Below, piece after piece: positions 1,554 to 26,989 of a stretch of 64,000 bases of DNA; the stretch's first letter is position 1; each line of letters opens with the position of its first letter. The notes under the pieces were generated by a model, which made no database searches, was not told the DNA's origin, and saw only the letters and a program-made list of their open reading frames with translations. A program made the position numbers and the translations under genes. Origin of the DNA: Klebsormidium nitens (taxonomy: Eukaryota; Plantae; Klebsormidiophyceae); assembly GCA_000708835.1 (NCBI GenBank), contig DF237090.1, positions 112,462 through 176,461 on the forward strand, written 5' to 3'.

Positions 1554-18260
<16,707 letters not shown>

Positions 18261-19120: not shown

Positions 19121-19687
19121 CTATCCTTTTCTTAAGACTTCTTCCAAACGATCATGGTAATAGTCTATGGTCTCCTTCCGTCTCAATTCGTACATCTCTG
19201 GGATAGTGCAACTCCAGCGTGGGATAACACATTTGTCAACGAAGTAGAGCATGGACTCTAAGCTGAAACTATACCACCCACTATCTTGTGCAACTGGAAC
19301 CCCCCCGTGTTGCTCTCCGTCATCCTCAAGGCTGGTAGCTGCCGCATAGAGCGCCTGGTTTGTATGCCAAAATTCCATTGACCCATGTAACGGCACCGAT
19401 GCTCCCTCCATCATATCCCACAACTTCAGTGCGAGCCTGAGCCGGTCTTTCCTTTGAAGATCTCCTCTTGCCTTGGATACAAACAACTCCTGAATGTTGT
19501 CATATGATGTTGTCGATAGTATTAGAAGTCTAAGCATCTTACAAGACATCCCATTTGCCTTGCCATCCCACCCATGCCTCCTTGCCATCAGCCTACAGTG
19601 CAAGGACCCCGCCTCGGTCAACACCATTAATCCGGCCTGCTGACAGAGGTCAGCACTCATTCCTCCATAGTCGTTGTCTGAACACAA
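19121..19687 (-). other. Orphan 188-codon open frame, possibly a gene fragment or decayed element
   Basis: Long stop-free frame in sequence of roughly 50% GC, preceded by a pyrimidine tract and AG (tgtgttcag). No family recognised. Confidence 0.3.
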
Positions 19688-20669
19688 GCTGCAACAGCTT
19701 ACATTGGTAAATGCTGAAAAGAACTATGTTAAAAGAACTAGAAGGTGAAAACAATTGGAGTAGACATCTTGTAAGTGTTGCAAAGAGAGCAAATATTGGC
19801 CCGGCAGATGTGGACAGACACCCGGAAAACTCTATGGGCCTAAGGCTGCACCAAAGTACAACCCGATGCAAGATGTGGCTTTCAAAGGTTCAGGAAGGCA
19901 CTACAAGCCTACTCCATTTCAACCCTCTGAGATGAGAGCAGAATCTTAGACTCGAAGCTGGAGGGGTAAAGCTACTAAAGCACGTGCTTCCTCTGCTTCT
20001 TCTGTCACTCTTGTTAGGAGCGCCTGGAGAGTGTTAGAAACTTGAAGCACCGCATGGCTCAGCTTTAACGTCCGGTCGGCCTGTGCAGAGTGTATGCCTA
20101 AGGCTCTGTTCAGAGTGTACCGGTATGCCTAAAGGTTGACAACGTGTATGAACGTTTGCTTGATCGATGCTCGCGCGCCAAGAGCTGATCCATGATTGGG
20201 CCCCGCAGCACTGGCTTTTGCACAATTGTAATCATAGGCGCGCAGAAGTCCACGTGCCTGGCCGGCCGGCCGGCATCAGTCCAGCTTTCATGTGCGTGCT
20301 CGAGTCCGCTCTTCGTATCAGATTGATGCGTGTGTTCGAGATTTTTTGAGTACCCAACATTAGAATACCTTCACCTGAAGAGCAGCACAACATTGACAAT
20401 CTGCGGGTTCAGGAGACAGCTCTTTTCATCAACATCGATCTCGGACCGTCATTTGCTCATTGCCCTGTAGCAGAACGGAATGATCGGATGCGACAGCTTT
20501 CATAAAATGCGCAGATGCATATGCTGCGGTAATCCACTGCCGACTACACCTCCCGCTCTTCGCCAGCGCCAAACGAATTGTCCGTTCACGTTATCGGAAC
20601 AAGGTCTTCGCATCCATCACGAGCCCAATCTTCTACGTTTGCTGAATTCTTTCCAGGGCTTTAGCTACT

Positions 20670-22831
20670 TCAGGGCCCACAGCCCGCCTCCACTGTCACC
20701 ACTCCTAGCGGCAGCTGGTACGCCGCTTGGCGCACTGTGATGAACGGATAGTCGCGCATGTCCGCCTCCTTCTTGAGCAGCAAAAAGACCACCGCCTGGA
20801 ATCGAGCGGGGCAGTTGCGGTACCATTGGGTCCTGTCGACGTACTGGCGCGTGACTGCCAGATCGGTGCTGAAGTAGTCGCGCAGCGGGTCGGATTCGCG
20901 GCTGGTGGGCAGCAGACCGTGCGCCAGAATGCTCGGAATATTGCGCGGGGGAGTGCCATGGAATGCCACCACGAACGGGCCCAGGATGGGGGACAATCGG
21001 AGGTAACCACACAAACCTGCAAAGCAGGAGAGGGCATCTTGATTTTGCAAATCGGGCTTGCCTGGGTTTGTCTGGTCGAATTGAAATTGTGACGGGACTA
21101 ACAGCTGCTGTAAGCACAAGTCAAGGGAACTGGTGTTTAGAAGTCTGCAGGGACGTTGAGGCCCACTTGGTCTTTGATTAAGTGTAAGATTAGCATGCAT
21201 GCGGCTGTTAACTACTGTAGCTGCTATCAGTACAAATGCTCCTACACATCCCAGGAGACTCCGCGTCTAGCTTTGTAAGCAACACCTAGTAGGAGACACA
21301 AGCATGCTTCACGGGTCCGCTCATCACCTTTGTTAAAAGGATCTACGATGCTATGAAAAATGGATGACGAAGGTTCTGCCTAGGGGGCCGGTTGTCCCCT
21401 CGGCGGCTCCCACCCGGTAGTCTCACCCGGGATGGTGTCCTCGTGTTGCAGCAGCGTGTCCAGGAACCGGTTGAGCATGTAGCTGGTAACCCGCAGGTGC
21501 GCATTAAGGCGCACGTCCGTCACCCGGTACCCGCGTGCCAGCTGCGCCGCGCGCCTCCCGAGGAAGCTTTCGTCGCACAGTTTGAGCAGCTCCTTGCGCA
21601 GGGCCGCCTGCGCGAGATCAGCGCGATCAAGATACTAAGATAGAAAGACCGTTAATTTCCAGTCCTCAGGGCCCGCAGCACTTCTTACCGCTCCGCGTCG
21701 GCTACAGAGTACTGTTTGGAAACTCTAGGATGTGGTTGCGTTCCATCGACCTAAAAATTCCTGATCTTGAACGAATGTCATACTCCGAGGTGTTTGGAGC
21801 AATCTGATGACGAACTTTTCGTCAGCGGAGCGATGCAAGTGCAAAGAAAGGGTCCGTGCAGCCCTCACCCGTCTTCGCTGCACTCCGCCGTTTAAGTAGC
21901 CACGTGGTATCGCCCCCGAGACAATCTCCGCGATAGTATCTCTGCAGCCGTGAAGGAGACTCCTTCTTTTCTGCCAAGAGGCTCCTTTGAGCTTCAGCAA
22001 CCAATTGTTCATGCGGGAAGCGCACGGAAGACGACAAAGAATGACCTCAGGGCCGCACCGGTCGCTTTGATGCAGCCCACTTAGCCACTGCGGGGCGAAG
22101 AGCTTCGCACCGCCGTAACAAGCCATCTGCATTCTGAAATCCAAGGCTTTGCGACAAAAGTTTGTCCACGGGCAAATATGTACAAGCCTTGACAAGTTGG
22201 TTCAACTTACCCGGGAATGACCTCCGGAAACAGGCACCAGGCGAGGAAGAGCAGGGCGGGCAGCACCGGCAGAGCAATGGCCAGGTACAACGCCCCCAAA
22301 CCCAGGAGGTAAGCGAAGAGCGCGCATAGGGTGAAGCCCAGGAATGGCGGGCAGAAGAAGAAGCCCAGCAAGAAGACGGTCGGCCCCAGCTTCGCCTTCA
22401 GGATCTCTAGTTGGTCCCACAAATAGGAAACGACGTCGCAAACCTGACGATAAGGAATTGATTCTGGTTACAGAGACTTTGCAGAGCTCAACGGCGACAG
22501 GAGAAGTTGGGCGTTTGAGTTACGATAAGGTTTCAGGCGGAATCGAGTGCAGGTGGGGAGCAATGCATGCACTGTTTTGAAAGATGCAATTCCTTCTCCG
22601 GTCAATGCTCCAATTACTTCCAAATCATTGACTCATCTTCGGTACATCCTGTCTTCGGTGATGTCTTGGGTTCTCTCGAAAGTCTCCATGTTCATGCAGG
22701 CCCAACTTTCAGCATCTTCCAAGCGGAAGTCTTTGATTGCTGTGGGAAAATACAAACACCTATGCAGAATTTTCGGTCAGATTGGAACGCCTGTCTGTAG
22801 ACAGCGCACTTACATCTACTCCCCCTTCCAT
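20670..22831 (-). CDS. Transmembrane-anchored PARP-like ADP-ribosyltransferase, copy 1 (5 exons, 283 aa)
   Basis: Exons 22831-22814, 22443-22211, 21941-21869, 21607-21427, 21016-20670 are all GT-AG with phases 0,2,0,1 and an open frame. Exon 2 is a long hydrophobic segment. Exon 5 has AFHGTPPRNIPSILAHGL, YFSTD, TRQY, VVFLLL and FITV..AYQLPLGVV. Confidence 0.8.
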
Positions 22832-23688
22832 CTCGACGCCCTGCCCTCTTTTTGCTGGCCGTGGTTGTGGCTGGAAAAATGAGCTCCTGCTTCTGGCATA
22901 TGGGAGCTCGTGTTTCCGATCTTGGCCGGCGACCTTGCGGATCAGTCACGTTGCCTTCCTGATCAAATGAGTCGAAAGCGCCCAGTTGTTGCAATTCATT
23001 CTCCTTGCATGGGGCAATCTGCACGATCAAGTGCTTTCGCACCGAAATGTCGCGACCACTGCAACTCTCAGAACGTCACAAGCCCGACATTACAATCGTC
23101 ATACACATCGAGGACGCGACTCGACCTGCCAGTATGAAGTTGGAGGAGACATTCATGCTCATTAAGGTGCCATTGCTGGTCTCAAGTGTCACTCAAGGAT
23201 CGAGATGGGCGGGGAAAGTGGATACGAGTCGAATTCGACGGTTCGCAGATCAATCATATTCTTAACTCTTCGACCGCAGCAGCTACCGTGCGGTACTTTC
23301 AACGGAGAAGTGCTGCATGTCACCATTGCAAGTAGCCGCCGGGTGGGATCGCATTCTTTCAAGCTTTCAAGTCCTCTGGAGAGGAACCTACTGACTGGAA
23401 CTAAAGGTGAGGGTTGTATGCATCTTTTAACGCAGAGGGGTAGTCCATGGTTGCCCGTCGATTCGTCTCGTCTGGAGTGATTTGAGCAGTGGGGAAGTGA
23501 CGATAAGAAAACGGAAACCAGACCGCTTGACCCTCAATGCGCCATGCAAGGGGAAATGAAAAGTGTTATCTGGGTGCTGGCCTGAGCATTTGGACGCTCT
23601 CGACTTTTCGGCAGTCGCTCGAAGATACTAGCTTCCATGCGGAAGAAGTGAGAAGTCTTCTAGCTACAGCGAGGGGGCCAGAAAAGCG
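22832..23688. promoter_or_regulatory. 857-bp spacer between the divergent ART start codons, putative bidirectional promoter
   Basis: Inferred from the head-to-head geometry of the two gene models. No specific core element verified. Confidence 0.45.
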
Positions 23689-25976
23689 ATGGCAGGATAT
23701 CGAAGGGCGGGGATTGCAGATGTGAGTGCGCTAGTTCTACATGTGAACGATCGTGCTTGATGATTGTAGATTGCTGCATGGTCGCTGAATCTGCTCACGT
23801 TGAGAATATGCAGACCCTCGCCATGAAAAAGTAGATTCTGATGGGCCGCACAATGTGAACTCCGAGCAGATGTCAAAATGCACCGGGCTAATGAAGAAAG
23901 ATCTGACTCGTTGAAAGCGTAAAGCAGAATGACGGGAGAAGCTATTCCGCGATTTGGTGCATCCTTTGCTCACCGCCTGAATTTGAATTCTCCTGACTGG
24001 ACCTCATAAACATTTCTTGAAGATCCAGTTCACGTTAGTTTAGCTTGTTCACCTCTCAAGTATCAGTTGTTGAAGTCTGAAGTCTGGAAAGTTTCTCCCA
24101 CGTTGATTTCGCCCTTCCGTATCAGTTTCTGGACTCCTTGTGCGACCAAGCAGAGCTCCTGAGGGCGTTCTACCGGCCGCGGCTCGTCTTCCTGCTGTGC
24201 GTCTTCCTCTGCCCGTTCTTCCTGGGCTTCACCACGCTCGCGCTCTTTGGGCACATCCTGGCTCTCGCCTACTTCTGGGCGCTGTACCTGGCCTTCGTTC
24301 TGCCGCTGCCCATCGCGGTCTTCCTCGCCTGGTACCTCTTCGCGGAAATGATACCCGGGTAAGTCAGCGCAGGTAGCTAAAGCTAAAGATCAAGTGGCAC
24401 ATACGCGCTTTCCTCCGTAAATGTTTCGATGCTTGAGGGTGCAAAAAAGCATTGTACGGCGTTGAAGTGCTTTTCAGCTCGCAGGTGCCAACTTTGGGCG
24501 CTTTGGTTTTGGACGTACGGTGCGGCTGTAAGATCGTTCTTTGCTTGCGCTTCTCGCATCCGCAATTGCTTGCTGAAGCTAAGAGCACTCTTGCCCTGTA
24601 AGAACTTATGCTTTCATTTCGGCCGCAGTGAAATCATTGCTGACGTCACGTCGGAGGCAACACCGCGTGTCTATCCAACCTGGGAAGTGCAGCAGACTGC
24701 GGCTCCTCGTGGCCCATCACTGTGGGATCGAAGACAGGTTGGAGCCGCTCAAGGCTTTCTTTTTTGGCATCGCTTCGCCGACGACAAGCAAACTATCCAG
24801 ATACGTTGGAACATTTTGGCGCGACGCACAATGAGGCGAAGAAATTTGTCCATTATTCATGTCAGAAAGGTAACAAAACGCGACCGTTTTCCAGTGTTTC
24901 CATGTGACAGTCTGCAGCCAAAGTTCTGAAGATTATAGACGGGCTCCAGGGCCCCATAAGTTGGATTTCTATTCTTCCGTCTTGATTACGCTGATCTCGC
25001 GCAGGCCCTGCGCGAGCGGCTGCTCGAAATGTGCGACGAGAACTTCCTGGAGAGGCGGGTGGCGCAGTTGGCGCGCGGGTACCGGGTGACGGACGTGCGC
25101 CTGAACGCGCACCTGCAGAGGTCCAGCTACATGCTCGACCGGTTCCTGGACACGCTGCTGCAACACGAGGACACCCTCCCGGGTGAGCCAACCGGTCGGA
25201 GACGTGACAGGATGCTTAGAAGGCTCCTCAACCGGGGTTTTGTAGAGGGTTCTTCCATCTTTTCTCCCCCTGTTTTGTCCCCCCTCCCCCTGACACCAGC
25301 ATTGTAATCCCTTCGGACAGTGCGGAGAGCTGACCCCTGGTATATGGAAATCCGCGTGTATATCCTGCCAGCTGGTTCTCTTCTCAGGCTCGAAAGCGGG
25401 CCTTTCGCAGTTTTGGGAGGCGTTTAAGTCGGTGGCAGAAGCGCCTCCAATGCCCCTACGCTCAATCGAAGACCGATAACCGTCGGCCCTGCTTTATCAT
25501 TGCACCAGCCCTTATTCTCTCTCCTGGTATCAGGAACCAGTGTTTTCACACACAAGAACGACACAAGCCCACATGACGAACGATTGCCCTGCCCCTGTCC
25601 TCGGTTAACAGATCTGTGGGAGGAACTCCGGTCGTCCCCCGGCCTGGGCCCGTTCGTGGTGGCGTTCCACGGCACTCCCCCGGCCAACATCCCGAGCATC
25701 CTGGCCCATGGCCTGCTGCCCACCAGCCGCGTGTCCGACCCGCTGTGCGACTACTTCAGCACCGATCTAGCCGTCACCCGCCGGTACGTCGACAAGACCA
25801 ATCGACTATGGTACCGCAACTGGCCCGCCCAGTTCCAAGCAGTCGTCTTTCTGCTGCTCAAGAAGGAGCCGGCGGTCGTGGACCACTTTTCGTTCATCGT
25901 GATGCGCCACGCGGCGTACCAGCTGCCGCTGGGAGTCGTGACGGTAGAGGCGGACTATGGGCCCCAAGAATTTTAG
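23689..25976 (+). CDS. Transmembrane-anchored PARP-like ADP-ribosyltransferase, copy 2 (5 exons, 305 aa)
   Basis: Exons 23689-23721, 24126-24358, 24629-24737, 25005-25182, 25612-25976 have the same phases as copy 1, and exon 2 is the same length (233 nt). Exon 5 has AFHGTPPANIPSILAHGL, YFSTD, TRRY, VVFLLL and FIVM..AYQLPLGVV. Confidence 0.82.
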
Positions 25977-26989
25977 CAGGTCGTTTTCAAGCTTCGGCTT
26001 CAAATCGGCGCGAAACTCTTAAAATACGTCCTGGACATCTACTGTGGCCTTGTTAAGGTACATGCCATAATACTATAAGACTTGCCACACAAGCAGCAAA
26101 TAGGTGCTCAGCCGCCCGAGCGTCCCATCGCCAAGTTACTTGCATACGCTGCCAGTGGGTCGAGTCGAAGGCAGCTTGCTAGGTTTTTGATTACGTCCAG
26201 GTGGAAACGTTAGCGCCTCGCAATACGTTTACAGAGGCTTGCCACTAACGGAGGCACACTTCGAGGCCGCATTCTTCTTGACACTGCGGTGAGCGCTTTC
26301 TGTTCCATGCAGCGACGTAGCCTCGACTATACATCCGAGCAGGATGGTGGTTTTACAGGATTGCTTGGCTGATACCTGCAGCGCCTAGCAAACATGTGCC
26401 AACCTGCCGTGACCGTACCGGTTCCACAGTGCATTTACTGGACGTACCTGCATGCTTGTTCATTTTCGTGCGCTGTGACATTGTTGAGTCCGGCCGCGGG
26501 CAGAGATATACAAAAATTGCCGCGAACGGCGATTGCATGGAGTATACGTCACTTGCACCGCATGCATGAACCATGTGCACCATGCAGCCTGATGCTCAGT
26601 TGGAGTGGAACCCATGCTTACGTTCATATGCGCGTTTTTGTACTACACGTAGTACGTGGCATGTTTGCACCGTGGACAGCAAGACTCGTGCACTTTTGCC
26701 CTACGAACTGATGCACTTCACATACATATGAGCATCATCAAATTGATTTTCCAAATGTAAAGCTAGCTAGAACCCCCCGCAGCGCAAGTGCTTGCCCACT
26801 ATATGTACGTCCATCCGATTGCATAGCATGTCAAGTACGGCAATACGGACGCCTTGCCAGCTTGAGGAATTTCAATCACATGCATAGTCACTGATAGAAT
26901 CACTCAACGGCGTTCACCGGCACGTACAGACAGTTGTACGTGCGGGTGGAATAGGTCGTGCAATTGCCTGTGCATCCTCGTTGCACTTA

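Follow-up and report, generated by a model that had tools for sequence, protein, structure and literature searches.

In the plant lineage, ADP-ribosylation is known mainly from the nuclear PARP1-3 and from the inactive RCD1/SRO proteins, the SROs being soluble nuclear proteins. The pseudo-PARPs known so far have lost the His and/or the Tyr. To our knowledge, the tail-anchored animal PARP16 is the one membrane-bound PARP that is well known. Its anchoring relies on one C-terminal helix (PMC3372510). In the classification of the PARP family, for which no streptophyte alga had been sampled at that time (PMC2964712), RCD1 was described as having lost its catalytic residues (Citarelli 2010, PMC2964712) and no plant members were reported for clade 3 (PMC2964712).

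The window studied here, that is, the whole 64-kb stretch of Klebsormidium nitens DNA that was analysed, contains two adjacent genes in head-to-head orientation (Table 1). Gene A (KFL_001410230, minus strand) and gene B (KFL_001410240, plus strand) encode proteins of 283 and 305 residues that are 69% identical and are both annotated as hypothetical protein (P0001 and P0002, respectively). A first-pass annotation had proposed two five-exon inverted paralogs with the same intron phases. Indeed, the translations of both five-exon models reproduced P0001 and P0002 residue for residue, and all introns are of the GT..AG type with phases 0, 2, 0, 1 common to both genes. The identity claimed for the splice flanks was also retrieved: the first donor of A (Table 1) corresponds to GAT/gtgagtgcgct in B, and the string gctgatctcgcgcag, which contains the branch-site-like motif CTGAT, precedes exon 4 in identical form in A and B. 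When the two genes were compared using blastn (word size 7), only the exons and one 51-nt intron block aligned, in agreement with the proposed divergence of the intron interiors. Exon 2 had been described as identical in the two genes. This holds for its length (233 nt) and phase, but not for its sequence, with about 73% identity at the nucleotide level and about 57% at the protein level. No additional copy or pseudogene of A or B was found elsewhere in the 64-kb window. The dN/dS ratio, weakly informative for this pair of paralogs, was 0.49 overall, 0.34 for the ART exon and about 0.95 for the hydrophobic core. In exon 4, the low dS (0.19) suggests that gene conversion may have occurred between the two copies.

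Table 1. Features of the A/B locus (positions in the 64-kb window)
Feature	Positions	Strand	Content
A exon 1	22831-22814	-	ATG plus 5 codons (MEGGVD); donor GAT/gtaagtgcgct
A exon 2	22443-22211	-	233 nt; amphipathic lead-in and about 55 hydrophobic residues (predicted two-helix anchor, hydropathy)
A exon 3	21941-21869	-	73-nt linker; 12 codons fewer than in B
A exon 4	21607-21427	-	N-terminal helices and first strand of the PARP domain (YRVTDVRLNAHL)
A exon 5	21016-20670	-	ART core including stop; H188-G-T, R208, Y216-F, T224, Y227; third triad residue P259
Between start codons	22832-23688		Divergent region; holds B non-coding exon 23283-23406 and the 5' ATG exon from 23615
B upstream non-coding exon	23283-23406	+	From RNA contigs; joined to 23615 or 24126
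B ATG exon	23615-23721	+	Coding 23689-23721 (MAGYRRAGIAD); acceptor 23615 used in X13
B exon 2	24126-24358	+	233 nt; predicted hydrophobic two-helix anchor
B exon 3	24629-24737	+	Linker; low-confidence, probably disordered
B exon 4	25005-25182	+	N-terminal helices and strand 1 of the PARP domain
B exon 5	25612-25976	+	ART core including stop; H204 25668-25670, Y232 25752-25754, third triad residue S278 25890-25892
Antisense RNA exon	21452-22552	+	Spans A exons 2-4; flanked by GT..AG introns 21003-21451 and 22553-23282

The AF2 model of the C-terminal domain had a pLDDT of 88.8 and a pTM of 0.86. Its best Foldseek matches were PARP10, PARP15 and PARP12 (E about 2e-6). The VIA comparison gave a Z-score of 14.0 with PARP12 (143 residues, rmsd 3.2, domain residues 15-179) and scores of 13 or more with PARP14 and tankyrase. 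In an unbiased structure scan, PARP13 (12.8), TNKS, PARP15 and PARP10 were found at Z 12.5-12.8, followed by TASOR (12.0), RCD1 (11.2), SRO1 (10.9), PARP1 (10.6) and PARP16 (9.9); all 17 chains with Z of at least 8 were PARP or pseudo-PARP domains. Tpt1 was found at Z 5.5, and a bacterial-toxin-like ART of the diphtheria/exotoxin type was rejected on the value of 5.0 obtained for diphtheria toxin and exotoxin A. An independent ESM Atlas model gave TM-scores of 0.6-0.71 with PARP clusters. With Pfam, A and B scored 14.2 bits against the PARP profile PF00644, below the cut-off of 26.7. Taken one by one, the exons gave PARP and DUF7002 matches below threshold at the HGT motif and nothing else, the anchor exon and exon 4 remaining without any match. 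The C-termini of A and B lie 5-10 residues past the last ART strand of the AF2 model. Every protein motif quoted in the first-pass annotation is present in the translations, and the PARP-like ART fold that it had deduced from them agrees with AF2, Foldseek and structure comparison. The C-terminal domain of A and B, as modelled, is a PARP-type ART fold.

The spacing of the NAD+ pocket is that of PARPs, in that strand 2 carries His-Gly and strand 3 a Tyr, which is followed by Ser/Thr at +8 and by Tyr at +11 (H204-G205, Y232, T240 and Y243 in B; H188-G189, Y216, T224 and Y227 in A). In the family alignment, F-H-G-T, R and F reach a conservation of 90% or more, and Trp or Phe replaces the first pocket Tyr in some relatives. 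The family profile could be aligned with PARP16 across its FHGS and TYL..S..Y motifs. The catalytic Glu is absent. The third triad residue, a site assigned by strand pattern (two residues before I/V-V) rather than by residue-level superposition, corresponds to S278 in B, to P259 in A and to various residues across the family; catalysis by A and B is therefore not assured. In addition, both the alignment and the AF2 model leave only a few residues between strand 4 and the triad strand, so that the usual acceptor site is missing. Because His and Tyr are present whereas Glu is absent, the sequences point to a mono-ART or an NAD+ binder rather than to a polymerase, as initially proposed.

A and B could also be pseudo-enzymes, in which a PARP fold maybe binding NAD+ or ADP-ribose would perform no transfer and would serve as a membrane-tethered reader or scaffold, like RCD1/SRO, PARP13 and TASOR. 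This would account for the variability of the third triad residue (S, P and many others in the family), for the almost complete deletion of the acceptor loop, for the overall relaxed dN/dS and for the presence of the inactive PARP13, TASOR, RCD1 and SRO1 among the structural matches. However, a family extending from algae to gymnosperms has retained H-G-T, the aromatic residue and S/T..Y, and we consider the loss of activity rather unlikely.

At the sequence level, the top PDB match of the family profile was the NAD lobe of Tpt1 (E 4e-7), with the local motif HGTPxxNxxSILxxGLxPxxR in common. PARP16 was the best PARP match after Tpt1 (E 2.4e-4, His and Tyr motifs aligned), and neither RCD1 nor SRO1 appeared among the profile-to-PDB matches at E ≤1. 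The Arg located 20 residues past the His is at least 90% conserved, some relatives give weak Pfam PTS_2-RNA matches (PF01885, below threshold), and the C-terminal half of the domain is compact, as in Tpt1/KptA. These likenesses could argue for a non-protein target, in which case A and B would catalyse a Tpt1-like ADP-ribosylation of phosphorylated nucleic-acid ends, or of a phospho-metabolite or lipid head group at the membrane, or would act as NAD+ glycohydrolases. Such an activity nevertheless appears very unlikely. The structural match to Tpt1 is restricted to the C-lobe (85 residues), with Z 5.5 as compared to 13-14 for the PARPs. Moreover, A and B lack the N-terminal RNA-binding lobe of Tpt1, which bears Arg-His-Arg, whereas their own N-terminal helices and strand 1 are PARP-specific, and they carry Tyr-Phe (Tyr/Trp-Phe in the family) in place of His-Leu. 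Membership of the Tpt1/KptA family, in which the Arg-His-Arg lobe is combined with a His-His-hydrophobic NAD lobe, was rejected on the same grounds, the match around HGT..R being outweighed by fold and architecture.

Upstream of the ART domain, the KD hydropathy mean over 19 residues exceeds 1.6 at residues 25-85 approximately, with a hydrophobic segment at about 28-83. In this region of B, AF2 placed helices at residues 9-39, 41-55, 59-69 and 71-83 (pLDDT 66-80), and linker residues 94-104 had a pLDDT below 50. Hydropathy and AF2 agree on a predicted two-helix hydrophobic hairpin, either transmembrane or monotopic. The anchor exon is kept in L001, a genomic contig of a related alga, and in L003, with the motifs (C/S)PxFxG and LP(x)LP; exon 2 of A and its L001 counterpart are 60% identical at the amino acid level. 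L001 also contains a matching 18-nt exon 1 with the donor context of A, as well as the motif TTCCATGCGGAAGAAG found in the 5'UTR of B (23633-23648). In the genomic contigs of related algae, the gene copies are arranged in tandem in direct orientation, showing that the head-to-head layout is not conserved.

Spliced RNA contigs from four studies, including runs X1, X13 and X15, were then considered. B exons 2-3-4-5 are joined in one 1177-nt contig and the three corresponding junctions recur in three to four studies, that between exons 2 and 3 being present in contigs of all four runs. In gene B, the hydrophobic exon is therefore spliced to the ART exons; together with its presence in relatives, this agrees with the N-terminal anchor put forward in the first-pass annotation. 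The junction 23721>24126, linking the ATG exon to the anchor exon, was not seen in the four runs. B contigs either skip the ATG exon or retain intron 1, and exon 23283-23406 is spliced to 23615 in X13, or straight to 24126 in X1 and, as a loose end, in X15. For gene A, sense splicing was sighted once (junction 21016>21427, X13, depth 2). A plus-strand spliced RNA runs antisense across A, with the joint 21002>21452 in 4/4 runs and the joint 22552>23283 in X1 (contigs X1 record 1 and X13 record 7).

These transcripts could mean that the anchor lies outside the main product, B being mostly a soluble protein of 220 residues starting at Met86 and A being weakly expressed or decaying, and silenced by the antisense RNA. 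Both the contigs in which 23406>24126 bypasses the ATG exon and those retaining intron 1 have this 220-residue frame as their first long ORF, and the introns of A are almost unseen whereas antisense splicing is recurrent. However, exon 1, its donor context and the Pro/Gly motifs of the anchor exon are conserved in L001 and L003, Met86 is absent from A and from L001, and the reading frames of A and B are intact. Because contigs lose rare isoforms, the missing junction is weak evidence. Overall, we regard a predominantly soluble product as very improbable.

A word-indexed protein search retrieved the two window proteins only, and relatives came from an exhaustive HMMER library, in which the profile search yielded 30 of them at E <1e-3. 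Those above the Pfam PARP threshold are P0010 (53.2), P0022 (39.7), P0004 (27.5) and P0027 (27.3). Four relatives have a WWE domain, and P0010 a UBA domain. Using the Cryptomeria relative as a query, only gymnosperm "hypothetical" proteins were obtained, three of which are in tandem in Cryptomeria; no SRO-type name and no angiosperm protein was found among these matches. Rather than an isolated invention, A and B form a single branch within a broader streptophyte family of compact PARPs, so far without a name and usually fused to WWE. In line with the first-pass annotation, the two proteins are listed as hypothetical only, and literature searches on the gene identifiers, on Klebsormidium PARP/WWE/RCD1 and on transmembrane PARPs in streptophyte algae returned nothing on A or B.

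In an extended scenario, A and B would be the membrane-tethered offshoot of an unnamed, streptophyte-wide and catalytically competent clade combining WWE with a compact PARP, present in Klebsormidium, Zygnematophyceae and gymnosperms and not found in angiosperms, which would be the algal precursor or counterpart of the RCD1/SRO line. In K. nitens, skipping of the ATG exon would toggle between the anchored 305-residue and the soluble 220-residue forms of B, and the antisense RNA, having exons in common with that transcript, would control the sister gene. We find this whole scenario unlikely.

With slightly better than even confidence, we favour the view that A and B are membrane-tethered, compact PARP-type ARTs that bind NAD+ and are probable mono-ARTs, produced by a local duplication in the Klebsormidium-lineage branch of the wider streptophyte family. 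Each protein would begin with a short amphipathic stretch, followed by a helical hydrophobic hairpin of some 55 residues and, after a flexible linker, by the compact ART domain; other family members have WWE domains where A and B have the anchor. Such a hairpin would have its two ends on one side of the membrane. Because basic residues precede helix 1, we infer that this side is cytosolic, so that the ART domain would face the cytosol from an endomembrane or from the plasma membrane. NAD+ would be held by the conserved His-Gly / Tyr / Ser-Thr / Tyr pocket, and a single ADP-ribose would most likely be moved onto membrane-proximal targets or onto the protein itself. Polymer synthesis is not expected, since neither the catalytic Glu nor the bulk of the acceptor loop is present. 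The further suggestions of the first-pass annotation, namely a heterodimer, a role in immunity or membrane stress and a dedicated system, are not supported by these results.

These results indicate that algae related to land plants possess extra PARP-type domains overlooked by domain databases, with an intact NAD+ pocket and fused either to WWE or, in A and B, to a predicted N-terminal membrane hairpin. In practical terms, about 30 clusters of "hypothetical" proteins now gain a domain annotation. If active, A and B would serve as a simple model for PARP domains reduced to a minimum and devoid of acceptor loop and would reflect membrane-localised mono-ADP-ribosylation in early streptophytes.

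Like A and B as modelled here, PARP16/ARTD15 has a single PARP-type catalytic domain, tethered to the membrane and facing the cytosol, with an H-Y-non-Glu triad. In contrast to PARP16, the predicted anchor of A and B is an N-terminal two-helix hairpin and their C-terminus ends within the ART domain. Moreover, Pfam gave no match in A or B to ARTD15_N (PF18084), the helical domain of PARP16, the structural Z-score is 9.9 and the acceptor-loop region of A and B is much shorter. PARP12/13/14/10/15 (Citarelli clade 3) and tankyrase are the best structural matches, with Z 12.5-14 over 135-151 residues. The triad of clade 3 is likewise H-Y-x without Glu, and WWE occurs in relatives of A and B as it does in PARP11-14. 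However, sequence identity with these proteins is 13-19%, A and B are devoid of WWE, macro and zinc-finger domains, little is left of the stretch from strand 4 to the triad strand, and the third triad position is not occupied by the usual Ile/Leu/Tyr. RCD1/SRO proteins (Z 10.9-11.2) are restricted to streptophytes and carry WWE before PARP, as do relatives of A and B, but A and B themselves have neither RST nor WWE according to Pfam and keep the His and Tyr, whereas RCD1 lost its catalytic residues. Finally, the Glu of the H-Y-E triad of the poly(ADP-ribose)-forming PARP1/2 and tankyrase is not found in A and B. Overall, A and B depart from a well-known enzyme family in an unusual but not radically new way.

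Two genes with divergent transcription, A and B, make up the locus. In both, every intron is of the GT..AG type and the intron phases are the same (0, 2, 0, 1). The exon models proposed in the first-pass annotation matched the public annotation, and a protein search showed that the translations are exactly those of KFL_001410230 (A, 283 aa) and KFL_001410240 (B, 305 aa), both named as hypothetical proteins of Klebsormidium nitens, a streptophyte (charophyte) alga. The two proteins are 69% identical overall and 78% identical in their C-terminal domains. At the nucleotide level, exons 2, 4 and 5 and one 51-nt intron block could be aligned using blastn. Inspection of the exon-intron boundaries confirmed that the splice-flank identities quoted in the same annotation are genuine; the string common to both genes before exon 4 includes CTGAT, a branch-site-like motif. 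Exon 2 had been described as identical in A and B. This holds for its length (233 nt in both) and phase but not for its sequence, which is just ~73% identical. No third copy of the gene was found within the window.

Positions of the A/B genes, of associated transcript features and of neighbouring features
Feature	Position	Strand
BEACH-WD40-FYVE-like gene, ending near 18260	~15400-18260	plus
Assembly gap (run of N) breaking the BEACH gene	about 17240-17330	
188-aa ORF	19121-19687	minus
Stretch with antisense RNA	20600-23406	plus
A/B pair	20670-25976	
Gene A, exons 1 to 5	22831-22814, 22443-22211, 21941-21869, 21607-21427, 21016-20670	minus
First intron of antisense RNA	21003-21451	plus
Exon of antisense RNA	21452-22552	plus
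Second intron of antisense RNA	22553-23282	
Exon upstream of gene B	23283-23406	
ATG-bearing exon of gene B, with its 5′ non-coding part	23615-23721	plus
16-nt 5′UTR string of gene B	23633-23648	
Gene B, exons 1 to 5	23689-23721, 24126-24358, 24629-24737, 25005-25182, 25612-25976	plus

The gene upstream of the pair appears to code for a large BEACH-WD40-FYVE protein, with WD repeats, a BEACH motif and, at the C-terminus, a FYVE-like zinc finger (RRHHCCNCG). The AT-richer spacer between this gene and A contains an ORF devoid of ATG (TTG start), which may be a mobile-element remnant or intergenic noise.

Both reading frames of the pair are intact. Using the Nei-Gojobori method, dN/dS between A and B was 0.49 for the whole coding sequence and 0.34 for exon 5, which encodes part of the PARP-type ADP-ribosyltransferase (ART) domain. 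A ratio of 0.64 was obtained for exon 4, where dS is just 0.19; so low a value suggests gene conversion. The ratio of 0.95 in the hydrophobic core fits with an anchor constrained chiefly in composition.

The Pfam PARP profile matched A and B at the HGT motif with 14 bits, below the cut-off of 26.7. An exhaustive profile search with both C-terminal domains as queries gave a family of 30 cluster representatives at E < 1e-3, including KFL_001610050 and KFL_000060290 of K. nitens and proteins of Closterium, Mesotaenium, Cryptomeria and Taxus. These named relatives are annotated as hypothetical throughout. Four relatives, P0010 (53 bits), P0022, P0004 and P0027, exceed the Pfam PARP threshold; WWE domains are present in several relatives, and UBA domains in P0010. 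Therefore, these proteins form a sequence bridge from A and B to the PARP family. No angiosperm member was returned by the profile search with the A and B domains or by a search from a Cryptomeria relative. The two further K. nitens paralogues of the compact PARP domain, P0004 (KFL_001610050) and P0005 (KFL_000060290), both hypothetical, differ in layout: one has 1042 aa, in which the ART domain occurs twice alongside repeated WWE-like modules; the second has 417 aa arranged as WWE-WWE-ART. In Cryptomeria japonica, three 289-aa genes, 73-75% identical, form a tight tandem cluster (P0008, P0032 and P0033; SUGI_1030200, SUGI_1030210 and SUGI_1030180).

The C-terminal domain of B (residues 122-305) was modelled with AlphaFold2 from a 32-row family alignment (pLDDT 88.8, pTM 0.86). 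Foldseek against the PDB ranked PARP10, PARP15 and PARP12 first (E ~2e-6). Re-examination of the Foldseek matches with VIA-align gave Z = 14.0 for PARP12 (143 residues, rmsd 3.2) and Z > 13 for PARP14 and tankyrases. When VIA-align was run without reference to the Foldseek matches, 17 chains reached a Z of at least 8, every one of them a domain of PARP or pseudo-PARP type; they include PARP13 (12.8), tankyrase (12.7), PARP15 (12.6), PARP10 (12.5), TASOR (12.0), RCD1 (11.2), SRO1 (10.9), PARP1 (10.6) and PARP16 (9.9). Other ART folds scored 5.5 (Tpt1) and 5.0 (diphtheria toxin and exotoxin A). The ESM Atlas's own model of the protein had a TM of 0.6-0.71 to PARP clusters. Since PARP domains led these searches, the ART fold claimed in the first-pass annotation stands.

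The family profile could be aligned with human PARP16 across FHGS and TYL..S..Y. From this alignment, the pocket residues are H204, G205, Y232, T240 and Y243 in B and H188, G189, Y216, T224 and Y227 in A, which are the counterparts of His862, Gly863, Tyr896, Ser904 and Tyr907 of the PARP1 nicotinamide pocket. Conservation across the family is at least 90% for the F-H-G-T motif, for an Arg 20 residues past the His and for a Phe right after the aromatic residue of the triad. The third triad position was assigned using the family alignment and the order of strands in the model (domain strand 158-161); B has Ser278 here, A has Pro259, and the position is unconstrained across relatives. In PARPs, the segment between strand 4 and the triad strand is long and bears the acceptor site; in A and B it is shrunk to a few residues. 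We infer that the domain binds NAD+ and transfers single ADP-ribose units at most, the alternative being a reader-type pseudo-enzyme. The HGTPxxNxxSILxxGLxPxxR motif of the family is near-identical in archaeal Tpt1 (E 4e-7), which leaves a phosphate-directed, non-protein target as a minority possibility.

On its N-terminal side, this predicted NAD+-binding domain is preceded by a segment, residues ~28-83, that is hydrophobic without interruption. The full-length model shows helices 9-39/41-55 and 59-69/71-83 (pLDDT 66-80), then a low-confidence linker (below 50 at residues 94-104) and the confident ART domain. There are basic residues before helix 1 and acidic ones after helix 2; on the positive-inside rule, this would put the ART domain and both termini on the cytosolic side.

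Genomic contigs of three other public runs contain close relatives whose exons are laid out in the same way. In L001, a contig from a related alga, an 18-nt exon 1 with the donor gtaagtgcgct, as in gene A, is followed by a 236-nt anchor exon of unchanged phase (60% protein identity to A), by exons 3 and 4 and by the beginning of exon 5. A second such contig, L003, carries two copies, in both of which the anchor exon is shorter and keeps the (C/S)PxFxG and LP(x)LP motifs. Neighbouring copies in both contigs are in direct orientation, not inverted. A maximum-likelihood tree places A and B as sisters (support 100/95), joined by the L003 copy (98/90) and by the metagenomic protein P0006 (95/88). 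This group stands apart from the groups of K. nitens, zygnematophyte and gymnosperm proteins that bear WWE domains. As judged from these sequences, the anchored form is a lineage-specific branch within the wider family, and the head-to-head arrangement is a K. nitens rearrangement rather than a conserved design.

Transcripts were surveyed over 20600-26050 in Logan contigs from four runs, each belonging to a different study; the RNA label of these runs is a guess, and their contigs do contain spliced joints. For gene B, every run shows introns 2 and 3 spliced out as modelled, and three runs show this for intron 4. A single contig of 1177 nt covers exons 2, 3 and 4, enters exon 5 and extends further, showing that RNA links the anchor exon to the ART exons. 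The second condition that would have refuted the first-pass annotation, transcripts leaving these exons unjoined, is therefore not what the RNA shows. The original observation is confirmed, and the initial view of the proteins as PARP-like and N-terminally anchored is supported.

The intron 1 junction of B (23721>24126) was unseen in contigs of the four runs. In run X13, the upstream exon was spliced to 23615, the start of the ATG-bearing exon; in X1, and at a loose end in X15, it was spliced straight to 24126 in exon 2, skipping the ATG exon. Other contigs retained intron 1. The ATG-bearing exon acts like a cassette exon. In the skipped or retained forms, a stop 15 nt upstream shuts the exon 2 frame, and the first long ORF starts at Met86 (220 aa, no anchor), predicting a soluble product. 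Since Met86 is not a conserved residue in A and L001, and since rare isoforms are lost in contigs, the missing junction was not counted as evidence that the anchored product is absent. The annotated start is supported by exon 1 and a 5′UTR motif, both of which are conserved between species. This motif, the 16-nt string TTCCATGCGGAAGAAG, is identical in B and L001 (about 1493-1508) and includes an upstream ATG opening a short uORF of 4 codons in B and 16 in L001.

For gene A, sense splicing was seen at a single junction, 21016>21427 (X13, depth 2). All four runs showed a plus-strand GT..AG intron in this region; two contigs mark the following plus-strand exon, antisense over A exons 2-4, which in X1 is connected onward to 23283. 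Therefore, a spliced antisense RNA crosses gene A over its whole length and may feed the 5′ exons of B. Its second intron is also GT..AG. The exon upstream of B, tied to the antisense RNA in one run, is also spliced onto gene B. A contig of X8 covers about 20330-23709 with the first antisense intron alone removed.

A literature search on KFL_001410230 and KFL_001410240 found no publication, and proposals of a heterodimer, an immunity role or a "system" for the pair are unsupported speculation. The 2010 classification of eukaryotic PARPs did not sample streptophyte algae and mentions no such architecture (PMC2964712). RCD1/SRO proteins resemble the A/B relatives in their streptophyte range and WWE partnership; they have however lost the catalytic residues and contain an RST domain, which A and B do not. 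In function, the closest analogy is with PARP16, a mono-ART that is tethered to a membrane and faces the cytosol; it is held, however, by a tail anchor at its C-terminus (PMC3372510), has an additional N-terminal domain and is more distant in structure. Structurally, A and B are closest to the WWE-associated mono-ART PARPs and to tankyrase.
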